The notes under the pieces: generated by a model
Seen by the model: only the letters and a program-made list of their open reading frames with translations
The model's database searches: none
What the model was told of the DNA's origin: nothing
Made by a program: the position numbers and the translations under genes
Shown: one piece after another, positions 26,635 to 53,556 of the stretch
Layout of the letters: the number at the start of each line of letters is the position of its first letter
Position numbering within the stretch: the stretch's first letter is position 1
Source: Dimorphilus gyrociliatus
Taxonomy: Eukaryota; Animalia; Annelida
Direction of reading: 5' to 3'
Length of the DNA: 64,000 bases
NCBI GenBank assembly: GCA_904063045.1
Contig: CAJFCJ010000001.1
Location: forward strand, 1,302,001 to 1,366,000

Positions 26635-29203
26635 ATGGCGGACGTGGTTAGCGCTCTTGCTGTAAGCGGTCAAAGAACTACAGGACAATCTATCAGAACA
26701 CAAAATGGTAAGTTATAGTTCAGTATAACTTAAATTACTTTACTTATTCTATCAATTTGCGGTCAATTTGCTCTTTTTTATCTCGTAAAAAGAGAATTTT
26801 TTGATTACCGGAAAAATGAACACGTGCATTCTTGTTTCAACCTATTTCTTAATTATGACTTTTTATTACAGTTACGGCCGCTCTTTCCATTGCTAACATC
26901 GTCAAAAGCAGTTTAGGACCAGTCGGTCTCGATAAGATGTTGGTTGACGATGTTGGAGACGTCACTATTACTAACGATGGGGCAACCATATTAAAACTGC
27001 TAGAAGTTGAACATCCAGCAGCAAAAGTTTTGGTTGAACTTGCTCAACTGCAGGACGAGGAAGTTGGTGATGGCACTACTTCAGTCGTAAGTACACAATA
27101 TCGCGAAATTAGCATATTACGAAGAATTAATTTATTCAGGTTATGATCGCCGCTGAGTTGCTTAGGAATGCTGACGAATTAGTAAAATGTAAAATTCATC
27201 CCACCTCTATAATCAGTGGCTATCGTCTAGCATGCAAGTAAGTTTAGCGACAAACAACAAACTCCCAACAACTTGCTGTTGAAATAATTAATTGTTTCAA
27301 TAGTATATACATTGGGAAAGATAAAGAAATGATACAGCTTTATGTCTTTTATAACTCTTTACTAGACAAAATAGTATTTTGTAACAATCTTAATTTTTTC
27401 AGGGAAGCTTGTAAATATATTCTAGAGAATTTTACAATAAGTGTTGACGATTTGAAGAGTGAATGCATTGTTAACGCTGCTAAGACTAGCATGTCGAGTA
27501 AAATTATTGGAACGTATCCTTTTTTCAAAAATTATTCAATGAACACCCTCACCCATTCCTGAGTATTTCGATACCCAGATTAGTTACGGGGGTTAAATTA
27601 AACTACAGCGTTATTTTATCATTTATTTTAAAATAGGTGATCTATATGTGCTCTAAACAATTATTTTTTCCTTGACTTTTCATTAGTGATGCAGATTTCT
27701 TTTCGAATATGGTAGTTGAAGCAGCTTTCGCCATAAAAACCTCTGATGGAAAGGGATCCTACAAATATCCCATTAAAGCTATAAATGTATTGAAAGCCCA
27801 CGGTGGAAGTACGAAAGAATCTATCTTAGTTAATGGTTACGCTCTCAACTGTACAATCGGTTCTCAACTCATGCCGAAGCGAATCACTAACGCTAAAATA
27901 GCCTTCCTTGATTTCTCTTTACAAAAAACAAAGATGAAATTAGGAGTACAGGTCTTAGTTGAAGACCCTGAAAATCTAGGAAAGATTAGGGAAAGAGAAT
28001 CAGATATTACCAAAGAACGTATTCAAAAAATACTAGCGTCTGGGGCTAATGTTATTTTGACAACTGGGGGAATAGACGATTTATGCCTCAAATATTTTGT
28101 TGAAGCAGGGGCAATGGCAGTTAGAAGGTGTACAAAGAAGGATCTTAAAAGATTGGCTAAAGCCACTGGAGGTAAGAATTGATTTGCACTTTTATTTTTA
28201 ATTCCTTCTATTGCTACATCCTGTTCGAAATAAGGGCAGGCTGAAATCTCTTGGAGGATATAGTAGTATTATGTTTTACTGGGTATTAATAGTTAACTTA
28301 TTCTATTAATACATTCGTACGCATCTAACAATCTCTACTTTTCAGGTCAGTTAGTAGTAACTTTGGCCAATTTGGAAGGAGAGGAAACCTTTGAATCTGC
28401 CTTGTTGGGAAACGCTGAAGAGGTTATACAGGAACGAATCTGTGATGACGAGTTGATTCTTATTAAGGGGTAATTAATATTTACCTTAATACCATGATAT
28501 TTAGTTGAATATTTTATATAAAACGGAGTTACCCATATCACTTTGCTAATAGGTTTTTATATAGCCTATTGGTTATACCATTGGGTGAAAGTAGAGAAAA
28601 TATAGCTAGTAAATAGTGGCTTATGATCTTGGTCATTATTTTAATATCTTATTCTACAGAACGAAAGCACGATCTGCCGCGTCCATAATTTTACGTGGAG
28701 CGAATGATTTCATGGTTGATGAGATGGAACGCTCTATTCATGACGCTCTTTGTGTAGTCAAGCGTGTGCTTGAGTCCAAGACGGTTGTTCCTGGCGGTGG
28801 AGCCGTAGAATCGGGCCTGTCAATTTATTTGGAGAACCTCGCAACATCTTTAAGCTCCAGAGAACAATTAGCGATTGCTGAATACGCTCACTCTCTGCTT
28901 GTCATTCCCAAGCAACTGGCCGTCAATGCCGCAAAAGACTCTACGGATTTGGTAGCAAAATTGAGAGCTTATCACAATACGGCCCAGACAAAGAAGGATC
29001 GTGCAGACTTAAAATGGATTGGTCTGGATTTGGAGAAGGGTGTAGTTAGAGATAATAAAAAGGCTGGTGTGTTGGAACCAACAATTAGTAAAATTAAATC
29101 TCTGAAGTTTGCTACCGAGGCCGCTATCACGATATTGAGAATTGATGATATGATAAAATTGGAACCTGAAAGAAAAGATCCAAGAGGAGGTTATGAGCAA
29201 TAA
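26635..29203 (+). CDS. TCP1: T-complex protein 1 subunit alpha (CCT1)
   Basis: [92 protein letters not shown]. Confidence 0.98.
27262..27389 (+). ncRNA. Candidate box H/ACA snoRNA (SNORA20-like 5' hairpin) in TCP1 intron 27238-27402
   Basis: Stem TCCCAA/TTGGGA, pocket CAACTT/ATATAC, 12-13 bp upper stem, H box AGATAA (27319-24) exactly 14 nt from the pocket. Second hairpin TGTCT/AGACA, with ACA (27384-86) 15 nt from its pocket plus 3 nt. Confidence 0.8.
27514..27686 (+). other. TCP1: U12-type (minor spliceosome) GT-AG intron in TCP1
   Basis: 5' splice site GTATCCTTT, branch site TTCCTTGAC (27668-76) about 10 nt before AG. Splicing gives SSKIIGT|DADFFSNM in frame. Confidence 0.9.
27545..27662 (+). 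ncRNA. Candidate box H/ACA snoRNA inside the U12 intron
   Basis: Hairpin 1: ACCCTC/GGGGGT lower stem, UUCG-capped upper stem, H box AAATTA (27595-600). Hairpin 2: ATCATTTATT/AATAGGTGAT, ACA (27657-59) 15 nt from the pocket plus ATT. Confidence 0.65.
28202..28333 (+). ncRNA. Candidate dual-guide box H/ACA snoRNA in TCP1 intron 28172-28345
   Basis: TCCTTC/GGAGGA stem, pocket TATTGCT/ATCTC, H box ATAGTA at 14 nt. Perfect 10-bp GTATTAATAG/CTATTAATAC stem, pocket TTACTGG/ATTC, ACA (28328-30) at 15 nt. Confidence 0.85.
28529..28649 (+). ncRNA. Candidate SNORA20-like H/ACA snoRNA in TCP1 intron 28470-28659 (5' hairpin clear, 3' half uncertain)
   Basis: TTACCCA/TGGGTGA stem, pocket ACTTT/TATAC, GCTAATAGG/CCTATTGGT upper stem, H box AAAGTA (28588-93) at 14 nt. 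The 3' hairpin is weak and has only an ATA variant box (28644-46). Confidence 0.55.
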
Positions 29204-35489: not shown

Positions 35490-38037
35490 TTTTTAATAAT
35501 TCGAATTTCTGTAAAGCATGCGACTTCAAGGTCAAGGTTTTGATAGATGGCGTAAATGTCGCAAGTTGCAAAAGTATTATTATTACGAGCTTTTAACAGG
35601 AAGTAATAGATAGTGAGTGGCTCCGTCTATGGTTTCGCGCCTAATTTTCGATTATCCGTGAATATTTCTGCCTATATACACACTTTACATTGGCTTTGTA
35701 TCTTCACTGCCATTATGATTCTTTTTTAGGCAACTAATTTCAATGTTTTACACATGTCATTAACTTTGTTAATAATTAATTGAAATAAAGCACAGAGGAA
35801 TAAATAAATGCATCATTTTCCTTTATCGTTTAGATTTATCAGATGAGAATATAAGCTAGTCGCTTAACACAATAACTATACAATAACTATGGGAAGACTA
35901 GGATTGCAATTTTATCTTTGACCAAAGTAGTGCTTCAATCTCCATTCTTCTGAAAAGAGTAGGCGTAATTCCAGGAAAGAAATGACACAAGTCTCGTATT
36001 AAGTAGGAATATGAATAGATTGTAAAAATTAGTCGATTAAGCTGTATTTAAGTCTGCCTGCTTCAACCCGTCCATCTTCGGTGTCTCTTCCATTCGCTCT
36101 CTCTCTCTCTCTTCCTTCTTCCGCTTACAATGAAATGTTTATACTTTTATTAGCTTTTTGTTTCATTAATAAAAAACAGAGAGGAAGGTGAAAAGATGGG
36201 AATGAAGACTGATCTTAAGTGTAAACGAACCCTTTCATTGTGACGAAATAAAGGGAAGAAAAAGCTCTGGTTATAAGGCTTTAAAATTTATCAAAAGATA
36301 TAGAATCATAGGAAAACGATGAGAAAATATATATTAGTCTACGTCTAGGGCAACCATGAGTTAATTGATCGATTAATTTATTAAATATTTGTACGATTAT
36401 TTCGATTAGGCCTTCTTTTAATGTTTAAACAGAAAAAGACGAATTACTTTCGAATAAAAGATGAAAGGAATATGGATTGAAGAGAAGAGAGAATATAGGT
36501 GAAACTAGTCTATGAAAAGGTAAAAGTACTGTAGTGAGTTGTAACGCCATTACATTGTGTATGTCAACATCTGCTGGAAAACTATAGATAAATAGTCCCT
36601 TTAGGCGTAAGAACACGACAGTACTTCGGTATTTCATTCTATCTGATCCCGTCATCCAAGATTATGGGAATCTTAGCCAAACCTTTTAAGTTGGAGAACA
36701 TGATCGCTAAATAGCTACATCCTTACCTATCCTTCTCTTTTTCTTTTTTCTTTTCCATGGTAAAGAAAAGGATATAGGTAGGGTAAAAAATATTCTTTTC
36801 ATTATTATGAGCTTGTACTTAAAAAAAGAGAAGAAACTCGGGTGTATGTTCTCTTTTTACTTGCTCAATAGACGAAGAACAAGGCTACACGAAATAAAAA
36901 ATTTTCTTAATAAAGTAGTCCGAAAAGATTGGTATGCAACAGAATTAGTAAGCGTTTTGGGAAATTGAATAATTAGAAAGTTAAATCCATAGACGTCGTG
37001 CAAAGACTTATATAGATAATTAGACCTTTAATTAATGTTTGAAAATTGCTCCAGTTGTATAAATAATGTATAGTCAAAAAATAGTTTCTCTCTCGTTCGT
37101 TCTATTTCTCTACTATTTCTATATAGACTTACTTTTAACGCCACAATATCATATTTGTCCTCTATATCCTTCGCTATAACCATATATATCGACTGTATTA
37201 GAGAAGATGAACAGAAAAGAGTCTGAGATGAATGTGAAATTTACAGTTTATTTCATCAAAGTTATTAAAAAAGAATGATAAGCTTTCTTTCTTTTTTAAT
37301 CATTATTTAAGATTGACTTAAAGACAAGTGAAGATTCTATTTCCTTAGTTTATTTCATCATCCACGGCAATTCGTGTGAGAGAATCAATTTTATACCGCT
37401 TGACATACGATCTACTCGAAATATTGTTACTTAAAAAGAGAAAACTCCTATTCGTTTACAGTCTTTTACTACTTTTTAACTAATAATTTAAATAGTTTTT
37501 TTTTGTTTTTCTTTTCTTTTCTCTTTTATATAAAACCCTCATAAATTTAAAAATAAACTTTTAGGACGATATTATAGATATTTAGACAATAGAATAGTTT
37601 ATCAACGATTCTTTTTTCTTTTTATAGATTAACTACTAGATATATAAATAAAGACTAAATGAATAATTTTTGTATATAATTTATAAATAGTTTATTACTA
37701 ATTCGTTGTATAATCAGGTTTTTCTGCATGAATTTCGCATTACACACACGTGCGTTTTATACTTGCGTCCATCTTACTTTTATGTACAAGCAGGTGCTCG
37801 CGTTGAAAATTTCGCAACAGTTTGTCTCCTTTATCTTTTGCAAAAAGAGCATCAGCGAAGAGAAAAAAAGGAACAGATGAAAGAAAAGAAAGCAGATTCT
37901 AGAAGAGAAAAGAGGAGGCTCATTTTCTGTACTTTTTTTGTGCCATTAAAAAAAAGACCGAGTGAATATTTTACAAGAGAAACCGGGTTGTTTTTTTTTT
38001 GCTTCTTTGCTTCTTTTTTTTTAATAAGAGATTAAAA

Positions 38038-52373: not shown

Positions 52374-52708
52374 GATGACTTCTACCCTAACCCGTCACGA
52401 TTAAAATTTGTAAAGAGACAGCTATATCTATTCAATAGAAATAAATAGTTTTGTCATCTAATACAAACGAAATAAACAGAGATTGTCATTCGAGTTATTA
52501 TATGTTTGGTATATTTTACTAAAATATATCAGAAAACTGGTAGTAGGCCTATGTGCGCGCATGCGTCTAAACTTTGGCGCGCGGTTCATTTGGTACGATT
52601 TCAACTGAAACTGTCCCACATACAGATAATAAGTACGACGCAAATGACTATAGTTAAATTTAATTAACAGAAGTAATTTGATGTTAAAAAGAAACTGAAA
52701 ACTTGATA
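52374..52708. promoter_or_regulatory. Probable bidirectional promoter TMEM170/Bcl-2 family gene
   Basis: Divergent ATGs are 335 bp apart. NRF1-type CGCGCATGCG (52556-65) and E2F-like TTTGGCGCG (52573-81). Confidence 0.55.
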
Positions 52709-53556
52709 ATGTTTAGAAAAGATAAAGCTTTGTTTCGTAAAAATAGCTCGTCGTCTATAATTATTGGAAACGTAATTGATTATATCAGCAAGGGCAAGAG
52801 GAAAAAATTGAGTCCGGGTTTGGTCAATTCAATTCATCAGTTTTCGGAGAAAATCTCTGAGGAGCTATTAGAAATGGTTGATAATGTACCGGTAACTTCA
52901 AGGGAATCTTTACAACAGTCTTTTTTATATGTAATGGAAAATATGTTCGAAGATAAGATATATACTTACGAAAGAATTTTATGTATACTAGTATTCGGAG
53001 GTCTTATAGCCAAAAGATGTATTAAGGAAGGAAGAAAGAATCTTATAAATATAGTAAAAGAATTACTAGAGCAATTCATAAATGATAATATATTGGATTG
53101 GTTAAACAAACACGGAGGATGGGTAAGTGTATTAATATGAGAACAAAGATGTAAATATATTAGAGAAAATGTATTTTTTTTTTACAATCCTACGAAAATC
53201 AGTAACCAAGTTTTACATTTTAGGAATTAAAATAATCTGTGTTCTATGGAATTATAACAAAGGGAAACACATAGCTTAAATATATTTCTCATATATTTAA
53301 CTGTTGGCTTTATAATCTCCTATTGTAGCTTCTATTTGATTTCTACTTAAATAATATTCAATAGAATTACTAGACAATATACTGAGTCTACGATGAAAAT
53401 TTGATAAATCTAAAATATTACTTATTACTTATTTACAAACAGGAAGGATACTCTGCATATTTTGAAGAAGAAACTATTGGGGTATTACTTCTGAAAACTG
53501 GTCTTGCCGCTGCTGGTGTAGTAACATTAGCTATAGCTGCAATCAGACTTTATTAG
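52709..53556 (+). CDS. Bcl-2 family protein, about 175 aa, tail-anchored (exons 52709-53122, 53443-53556)
   Basis: BH1-like MFEDKIYTYERILCILVFGG, BH2 ILDWLNKHGGW|EGY with a phase-0 intron after GGW as in Bcl-2/Bcl-xL, and C-terminal TM GVLLLKTGLAAAGVVTLAIAAIRLY*. Confidence 0.8.

Follow-up and report, generated by a model that had tools for sequence, protein, structure and literature searches.

A candidate H/ACA-like unit inside the U12-type intron of TCP1 in the annelid Dimorphilus gyrociliatus

The fourth intron of TCP1 in Dimorphilus gyrociliatus is almost certainly a genuine U12-type intron, and its interior holds a compact hairpin-AAAUUA-hairpin-ACA unit that appears to be confined to this annelid lineage. 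On balance the geometry of the unit and the company it keeps within the gene favour a putative lineage-specific H/ACA snoRNA. The survival of the intron is not owed to the unit.

The minor intron of TCP1

The donor of intron 4, GTATCCTTT, agrees with the /RTATCCTTT signal and is one of 13 matches to RTATCCTT within the 64-kb window (the whole stretch of DNA that was analysed, 64,000 nucleotides). The branch adenosine lies 11 nt from the terminal AG at 27685-86, a spacing typical of the TTCCTTRAY motif (about 10-15 nt before the 3' splice site), and there is no long polypyrimidine tract. Splicing at these positions is apparent from RNA-derived contigs, with the junction 27513/27687 found in four runs from three studies, each skipping 173 nt with GT..AG ends and zero ambiguity. 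In the TCP1 protein search exon 5 alone served as the query, and the exon peptides were queried one by one.

An initial sequence-only reading had described this as the only U12-type intron in the window, which is true for strict-consensus signals. The minus strand has a second U12-like donor/branch pair (53451/53029), which was rejected on the ground that it runs antisense to a BCL-2-like coding exon.

Table 1. Features of TCP1 intron 4, its flanking exons and the candidate unit within it (positions are those of the window)
Feature	Positions	Strand	Basis or remark
TCP1 exon 4	27404..27513	+	RNA contig joints; translation matches TCP1; peptide ends ...SSKIIG, then AC, phase 2
TCP1 intron 4, U12-type GT-AG, 173 nt	27514..27686	+	RNA junction, signals, orthologous introns
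U12 5' splice site GTATCCTTT	27514..27522	+	sequence; same signal in 4 other species
H/ACA-like unit, candidate	27545..27662	+	RNAfold and geometry scanner
5' hairpin of the unit	27545..27593	+	fold -11.9 kcal/mol; geometry scanner
5' hairpin lower stem ACCCUC/GGGGGU	27545-50 / 27588-93	+	fold
5' hairpin pocket ACCCAUUC / AUUAGUUAC	27551-58 and 27579-87	+	fold
5' hairpin upper stem, 8 bp, loop UUCG	27559-66 / 27571-78	+	fold
H-box candidate AAATTA (ANANNA)	27595..27600	+	16 nt from 5' pocket top / upper stem
3' hairpin of the unit	27607..27652	+	fold -8.7 kcal/mol, z = -1.8; geometry scanner
3' hairpin lower stem AGCG/UGCU	27607-10 / 27649-52	+	fold
3' hairpin pocket 7/7	27611-17 and 27642-48	+	fold
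3' hairpin upper stem, 10 bp	27618-27 / 27632-41	+	fold
ACA box (27657-59) plus 3 nt, predicted 3' end	27657..27662	+	15 nt from 3' pocket
U12 branch-site motif TTCCTTGAC	27668..27676	+	sequence; branch A 27675
TCP1 exon 5	27687..28171	+	RNA contigs and protein search

When the class of the orthologous intron was compared, as had been proposed, the GTATCCTTT donor was found at the identical phase-2 codon position in four other species (loci L001, L007, L008 and L009), in introns of 73, 150 (the sister species), 187 and about 678 nt with unrelated interiors. U2-type introns occupy the position in loci L005 and L010, and there is no intron there in L006. Mouse and human TCP1 are both in published lists of minor-intron genes, with the signals GTATCCTTG, after the exon end AAT, and TCCTTAAC (Olthof et al. 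2019, PMC6717393; see also PMC8034651), and the mammalian intron is spliced and at times retained (PMC6717393). It resembles intron 4 in being in the same gene, in having GT-AG U12 signals and in exon-end letters that fit phase 2 after ...KIIG; it differs in being longer (mouse 350 nt, human 538 nt) than the 173-nt intron of Dimorphilus. Positional identity between mammal and worm is drawn from three exon letters in the supplement of PMC6717393 together with five invertebrate loci, and on this comparison of sequences intron 4 is the ortholog of the mammalian TCP1 minor intron, which would have been retained since at least the bilaterian ancestor. The U12 status of the TCP1 intron is real, but was known already from mouse and human, and a minor intron common to mammals and annelids that persists in a very compact genome adds little to the deep conservation already known.

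Structure of the unit and its neighbours

All of the features first claimed for the unit are found at the coordinates given to them, with a predicted end that lies 5 nt rather than about 6 nt upstream of the branch-site motif. Both pocketed hairpins are recovered by RNAfold and are arranged in the hairpin-hinge-hairpin-tail order of box H/ACA RNAs, with AAAUUA in the hinge and ACA in the tail, and the distance from pocket to box falls within 14-16 nt twice, being 16 nt to AAAUUA and 15 nt to ACA.

Human TCP1 is host to the H/ACA snoRNAs SNORA20 and SNORA29 (PMC4824147), and in Dimorphilus conserved H/ACA RNAs are found in introns 3, 5 and 6 of the same gene. Those of introns 3 and 6 are SNORA20-like guides directed at the GCGUAUAUUAAAGUUG site of 18S rRNA. 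Their best Rfam scores fall short of the threshold, with 20 bits for SNORA20 in intron 3 and 25 bits for SNORA27 in intron 6. The intron-4 unit shares its host gene with the human pair, but resembles neither family in Rfam searches; SNORA29 is said to lie in "intron 4" of human TCP1, a numbering that is not equated here with the minor intron.

The intron-4 unit and the snoRNAs of introns 5 and 6 are alike in form, as all have a 6-bp C-rich/G-rich lower stem, an 8/9-nt pocket, 14-16 nt from pocket to box, a 3' hairpin whose lower stem is 4 bp long and a 3' end of the ...CUAAACAAU type. They differ in that the intron-5 and intron-6 snoRNAs are conserved in the sister species with compensatory changes, whereas the intron-4 unit is not conserved. 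They also lie in U2-type introns in which 15-16 nt separate the ACA box from the 3' splice site, whereas in intron 4 this distance is 27 nt and the ACA lies upstream of the U12 branch site.

A candidate target in 18S rRNA

Two pairings with rRNA had been suggested for the 5' hairpin, and both of the quoted rRNA strings are present in real eukaryotic rDNA. The pairing of the 5' pocket with 18S UAAU-U-G-GAAUG stands as far as the string and the 16-nt spacing are concerned, but the duplex is a modest one of 4+5 bp that is AU-rich and is followed by an A.C mismatch, and the label Psi572 looks wrong, since in the 18S genes that were retrieved the uridine falls at about nt 509-519, which we take to be close to U557 in human numbering. 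A test against conserved 18-mers was too strict and was replaced by one against shuffled pockets, in which the 5' pocket scores p about 0.01 and the SNORA20-like guide of intron 6 scores p = 0.013; the 3' pocket has no target (p = 0.59). The surrounding 18S site is conserved, though the target uridine itself is C in some eukaryotes, and to our knowledge the uridine in GUAAU-U-GGAAUG is not among the known pseudouridines.

Guide RNA, chance resemblance or intron structure

That intron 4 hosts an H/ACA snoRNA was the central proposal of the sequence-only reading, and the evidence on it is divided: the geometry is rare and like that of introns 5 and 6, but the unit is not conserved and has no match in Rfam. 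The MFE of intron 4 is not better than that of shuffled sequences for either the whole intron or the whole unit (z about -0.9), and as fold energy is too coarse a measure of H/ACA pockets a geometry scanner was written for the H/ACA layout, its thresholds being set with the candidate already known. Run on 3000 dinucleotide-shuffled copies of the intron-4 interior, the scanner finds the full layout in none, and the reversed window gives one messy match in 128 kb. The forward window gives 11 matches, of which exactly one full unit falls in each of TCP1 introns 4, 5 and 6 with near-identical parameters; only these three are compact with symmetric pockets and the 8 remaining matches look spurious.

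Conservation points the other way. Between Dimorphilus gyrociliatus and its sister species, which have diverged at 4-fold sites to K4 = 0.62, the interior of intron 4 gives no alignment (z = 0.3), whereas introns 1, 3, 5 and 6 align with z of 7.6-31.8; the intron sequence of the sister species is the same in four independent contigs. The scanner finds no H/ACA layout in the orthologous introns at six other loci, and the intron-4 unit lacks the conserved boxes, pocket and covarying stems that related species share in a box H/ACA RNA. A search of 27400-27800 against Rfam gives no H/ACA family, SNORA20, SNORA27 and SNORA29 included, even at E <= 10. Searches with blastn-short and nhmmer give neither a paralog nor an ortholog of the unit in the window or the fetched loci, and global alignment with the snoRNAs of introns 3, 5 and 6 shows no clear paralogy, the highest z being 2.2 for intron 6.

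It is possible, although we consider it somewhat doubtful, that within a real U12 intron the interior is neutral, fast-evolving, AT-rich filler which mimics an H/ACA RNA by chance and yields no stable RNA. Such filler would explain an intron that lacks the conserved core of every other long TCP1 intron, and it agrees with the absent Rfam match, the unremarkable MFE, the spurious scanner matches elsewhere in the window and a target uridine that is not conserved and is not known to be a pseudouridine. The length of intron 4, 173 nt where the element-free intron 2 has 53 nt, speaks for a hosted RNA, but the sister intron is also long at 150 nt without an H/ACA layout, so that length alone is no sign of cargo. 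Against chance are the shuffled and reversed sequences, in which the layout is so seldom seen, and the compact, symmetric form that the unit shares with its two conserved neighbours and not with the 8 spurious matches. The complementarity of its pocket to a conserved 18S site and its location, on the sense strand within an intron of a multi-snoRNA host gene, also argue against filler.

An improbable alternative is that the hairpins serve the intron as structure, for example by shortening the effective distance from donor to branch site or by modulating minor splicing, without any guide RNA being made. The unit does occupy the space between donor and branch site, ending just before the branch motif, and one run has an unspliced contig over intron 4, with a depth about 5% of that of the mRNA. 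However, the varied lengths and unrelated interiors of the orthologous U12 introns show that no such structure is required, and the exact box spacing of 14-16 nt would be without a role.

Least credible of all is the second pairing, in which the 5' hairpin would take up another fold that exposes GAGU/UAGUUAC and would guide the pseudouridine in helix 69 of the LSU rRNA. In its favour are a perfect 7+4 bp match to GUAACUA-U-G-ACUC in 11 of 11 rDNA loci and a 14-nt spacing to the H box. Against it, the upper stem that it needs (AUUUCGAUACCCAGAU) is worth 0.0 kcal/mol, the refolded hairpin lies 8.2 kcal/mol above the MFE fold, and an equal score is reached by 14% of shuffles (p = 0.14) when the split point is free. 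A guide for so universal and essential a site should also have been retained by the sister species, where the intron-4 unit is missing.

Survival of the intron and possible production of a guide RNA

It had also been suggested that the snoRNA explains why this U12 intron survived genome compaction. This idea is refuted, as relatives retain the intron without the unit: the sister species keeps it with an unrelated interior and another species keeps it at 73 nt. The persistence of minor introns is left unexplained by the H/ACA-like unit.

If the unit is a lineage-specific H/ACA snoRNA, it would be either a recent gain in Dimorphilus gyrociliatus or a loss in its sister species, and would thus be a clear case of the birth or loss of a snoRNA between two close species. 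The RNA would presumably be bound by dyskerin-type proteins while the transcript is still nascent, and trimming would then free it either from the excised minor intron or from unspliced RNA. Its 5' pocket may then guide modification of the non-canonical 18S uridine described above, or the RNA may be an orphan. A fuller version of this reading, which we put forward tentatively and with less than even confidence, is that a young H/ACA guide arose, or uniquely survives, in an ancient minor intron, with its output tied to the kinetics of the minor spliceosome, and may place a lineage-specific pseudouridine in 18S rRNA near the GUAAUUGGAAUG segment. No description of a snoRNA hosted by a U12-type intron was found in the literature searched. 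A guide RNA released by way of the slow minor spliceosome would, if true, provide a simple system in which to ask whether the rate of minor splicing limits snoRNA dosage.

The RNA data consist of assembled contigs from what appear to be poly(A)-type libraries. No contig in them represents the conserved intron-5 and intron-6 snoRNAs either, so the data speak neither for nor against a 120-nt RNA from intron 4. In run X2 a contig that enters the intron from exon 4 ends at 27658, within the ACA box, which at the level of a single contig is a weak but suggestive observation.

The minor intron of TCP1

TCP1 (CCT-alpha) lies on the + strand in seven exons, with 6/6 junctions covered by RNA-derived contigs (four runs, three studies). 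Intron 4 had been read from sequence as the only U12-type intron in the window. It is U12-type, as donor and branch motif match the consensus, an RNA junction places the intron and orthologous introns of several species are U12-type; that it is the only one holds for strict-consensus signals. The branch A lies 11 nt before the AG, and the donor motif is the only one in the window with a suitably placed branch motif on the same strand. A second U12-like pair on the minus strand (53451/53029) is spurious, lying opposite coding sequence in an exon of a BCL-2-like gene on the other strand. That BCL-2-family-like gene (52703-53556, +) encodes …DWLNKHGGW…, then has an exon for a C-terminal membrane anchor.

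The same intron was sought in other species by a protein search with the TCP1 exon-5 peptide alone, the contigs encoding the best matches being fetched, exon peptides placed one by one in each locus and the sequence separating exon 4 from exon 5 then read. The check across animals that had been proposed finds it U12-type in the sister species (L001), three further fetched loci (L007, L008, L009), mouse and human. Minor-intron gene lists include Tcp1 of mouse (intron of 350 nt) and TCP1 of human (intron of 538 nt) (PMC6717393, PMC8034651), the mammalian signals are AAT/GTATCCTTG and TCCTTAAC (PMC6717393), and the exon letters AAT fit GGA AT/, the same phase-2 position, three letters being compared. 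As listing, signals and exon letters agree, intron 4 is on this comparison orthologous to the mammalian minor intron and ancient; the TCP1 minor intron as such is already known. Across L005, L010 and L006 this one site shows U12-to-U2 conversion and intron loss.

Features of TCP1 and its introns, and the intron-4 position in other fetched loci (coordinates of each locus; in splice signals a slash marks the exon end)
Feature	Position	Strand	Description
TCP1 intron 4	27514-27686	+	173 nt, GT..AG, junction without positional ambiguity (RNA contigs)
Intron 4 5' end GTATCCTTT	from 27514	+	full U12-type consensus match
Intron 4 branch motif TTCCTTGAC	27668-27676	+	full U12-type consensus match
Intron-4 unit, 5' hairpin			lower stem ACCCUC/GGGGGU, pocket ACCCAUUC / AUUAGUUAC, upper stem 8 bp, UUCG loop; pocket to AAAUUA 16 nt
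Intron-4 unit, 3' hairpin			lower stem AGCG/UGCU, pocket 7/7, upper stem 10 bp; pocket to ACA (27657-59) 15 nt
Conserved H/ACA snoRNA, intron 3	27262-27389		5' hairpin pairs 6+6 with 18S GCGUAUAUUAAAGUUG, SNORA20-type
Conserved H/ACA snoRNA, intron 5	28203-28333		3' hairpin pairs 4+8 with 18S GAAU-UC-CCAGUAAG
Conserved H/ACA snoRNA, intron 6	28530-28650		5' hairpin pairs 5+5 with 18S GCGUAUAUUAAAGUUG, SNORA20-type
L001 (sister species; syntenic; 94% aa identity)			GGA AC/GTATCCTTTTT ... TTTCTTAAC(9)AG, 150 nt
L007			GTATCCTTT ... TTTTCTTAACC, about 678 nt
L008			GTATCCTTTC, only 73 nt
L009			GTATCCTTTC ... TTTTCCTGAGC, 187 nt
L005	2009-2164		U2-type (GTAGGT)
L010	1466-1539		GC-AG / U2-like
L006	2668-2672		no intron

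The H/ACA-like unit

The hairpin-AAATTA-hairpin-ACA unit proposed within the intron is recovered, RNAfold giving two hairpins with internal pockets. The fold energy of intron 4 is unremarkable against shuffles (plain MFE z = -0.9), and therefore a scanner for the defining H/ACA geometry was written, which for each hairpin takes a lower stem of 4 bp or more, a two-sided pocket, a closed upper stem and 14-16 nt to the box, and for a full unit two such hairpins linked by an H box and followed by ACA. In TCP1 it calls introns 4, 5 and 6 with exactly one full unit apiece, the intron-4 unit being almost equal to that of intron 5 in these parameters. None arose in 3000 dinucleotide shuffles of the intron-4 interior, and reversing the window, a control in which composition and hairpin content stay unchanged, gave one messy match in 128 kb; the layout is therefore far from chance expectation, with thresholds that were chosen only after the candidate was known. 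The forward window has 11 matches, and the eight outside TCP1 look spurious, with long and branched hairpins or lopsided pockets. A CT-rich/AG-rich near-palindrome (36721-36884) resembles H/ACA both forward and reversed, a false positive to watch in simple H/ACA scans.

Candidate rRNA targets

Eukaryotic rDNA units were retrieved by way of the helix-69 motif. With the 5' pocket fixed as in the MFE, 18S UAAU-U-G-GAAUG (4+5 bp) scores best among conserved sites, a score equalled by shuffled pockets with p about 0.01. The duplex is AU-rich and followed by an A.C mismatch in all rDNA examined, and the target U is C in several eukaryotes. This U sits at about nt 509-519 in the fetched 18S genes, which, with Um627, Gm644 and Psi649/651 as anchors, we take to be human U557, Psi572 presumably lying 15 nt further 3' in CACUU-Psi-AAAUCC; the pairing and 16-nt spacing of the sequence-only reading stand, but its Psi572 label looks wrong on this numbering. 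Positive controls gave the expected outcome, the intron-6 hairpin pairing with GUAUA-UU-AAAGU (p = 0.013) and the intron-3 hairpin with the adjacent uridine (p < 0.004). The 3' pocket of the intron-4 unit has no conserved rRNA target (p = 0.59).

The alternative pairing with LSU helix 69 is a perfect 7+4 bp match and was rejected, as its upper stem has 0.0 kcal/mol, the fold is 8.2 kcal/mol worse than the MFE and, with the split point free, 14% of shuffles score equally.

Conservation, RNA evidence and readings

Aligned with their sister-species counterparts, the interiors of introns 1, 3, 5 and 6 give z = 16.5, 7.6, 31.8 and 16.1, with compensatory changes in the alignments, whilst intron 4 gives z = 0.3 and no alignment signal. 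Divergence at 4-fold sites is K4 = 0.62, and unconstrained intron flanks are practically unalignable. The sister-species intron 4, the same in four independent contigs, folds no better than shuffles and, even with the thresholds relaxed, has no H/ACA layout; the scanner likewise finds none in the orthologous introns of L005, L007, L008, L009 and L010. No paralog of the unit occurs in the window or fetched loci, nor is there clear paralogy with the neighbouring TCP1 snoRNAs. Rfam has no match in intron 4, which carries little weight because the clearly conserved intron-5 RNA has none either, and introns 3 and 6 match only below threshold (SNORA20 and SNORA27). Non-conservation, on these alignments, is the main evidence against an intron-4 snoRNA; between species this far apart, a functional guide for rRNA is not usually so unconserved.

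RNA evidence comes from assembled contigs. In run X2 a 156-nt contig (27503-27658, about 5% of mRNA depth) runs from exon 4 into intron 4 and ends within the ACA box, and in run X3 another (27220-27386) runs from the upstream exon into intron 3 and ends at its ACA (27384-86). Such ends weakly fit unspliced RNA trimmed 3'-to-5' to an assembled snoRNP. The same libraries hold nothing of the conserved intron-5 and intron-6 RNAs, so a mature intron-4 snoRNA is neither shown nor excluded by them.

The hosted snoRNA that had been proposed has a geometry rare by chance in its favour but no conservation with sister species or orthologous introns. A lineage-specific H/ACA snoRNA fits both geometry and non-conservation and is, on balance, probable; it may have been gained in this lineage, perhaps by duplication from another locus, or might have been lost in the sister lineage. 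That the unit is neutral look-alike sequence agrees with the z of the intron-4 interior, but geometry and pocket match on the sense strand, in an intron of a gene hosting several snoRNAs, argue against chance, and this reading is possible though less likely. Other readings have a small probability.

The snoRNA cannot be why the U12 intron survived, as had been suggested, because the sister species and L008 keep the intron without the unit. Putative dependence of snoRNA yield on minor splicing is a reasonable idea, one that fits any intronic snoRNA. The literature searched describes no H/ACA RNA hosted by a minor intron; if confirmed, this one would add a member to known kinds, not a new mechanism.

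Neighbouring introns

The 5' hairpins of introns 3 and 6 pair with adjacent uridines of the same 18S segment. In intron 5 (stretch 28320-28345) the ACA box lies inside CTAACAAT, 15 nt from the 3' splice site, and therefore probably overlaps the U2 branch site in this compact genome. Intron 1 (26708-26871) has a core at about 26790-26830 that is kept in the sister species (...TTACCGGAAAAATGAACACGTGCATTC..., holding a CACGTG E-box); the scanner calls no H/ACA unit in it, and an intronic enhancer or another small RNA is possible there.
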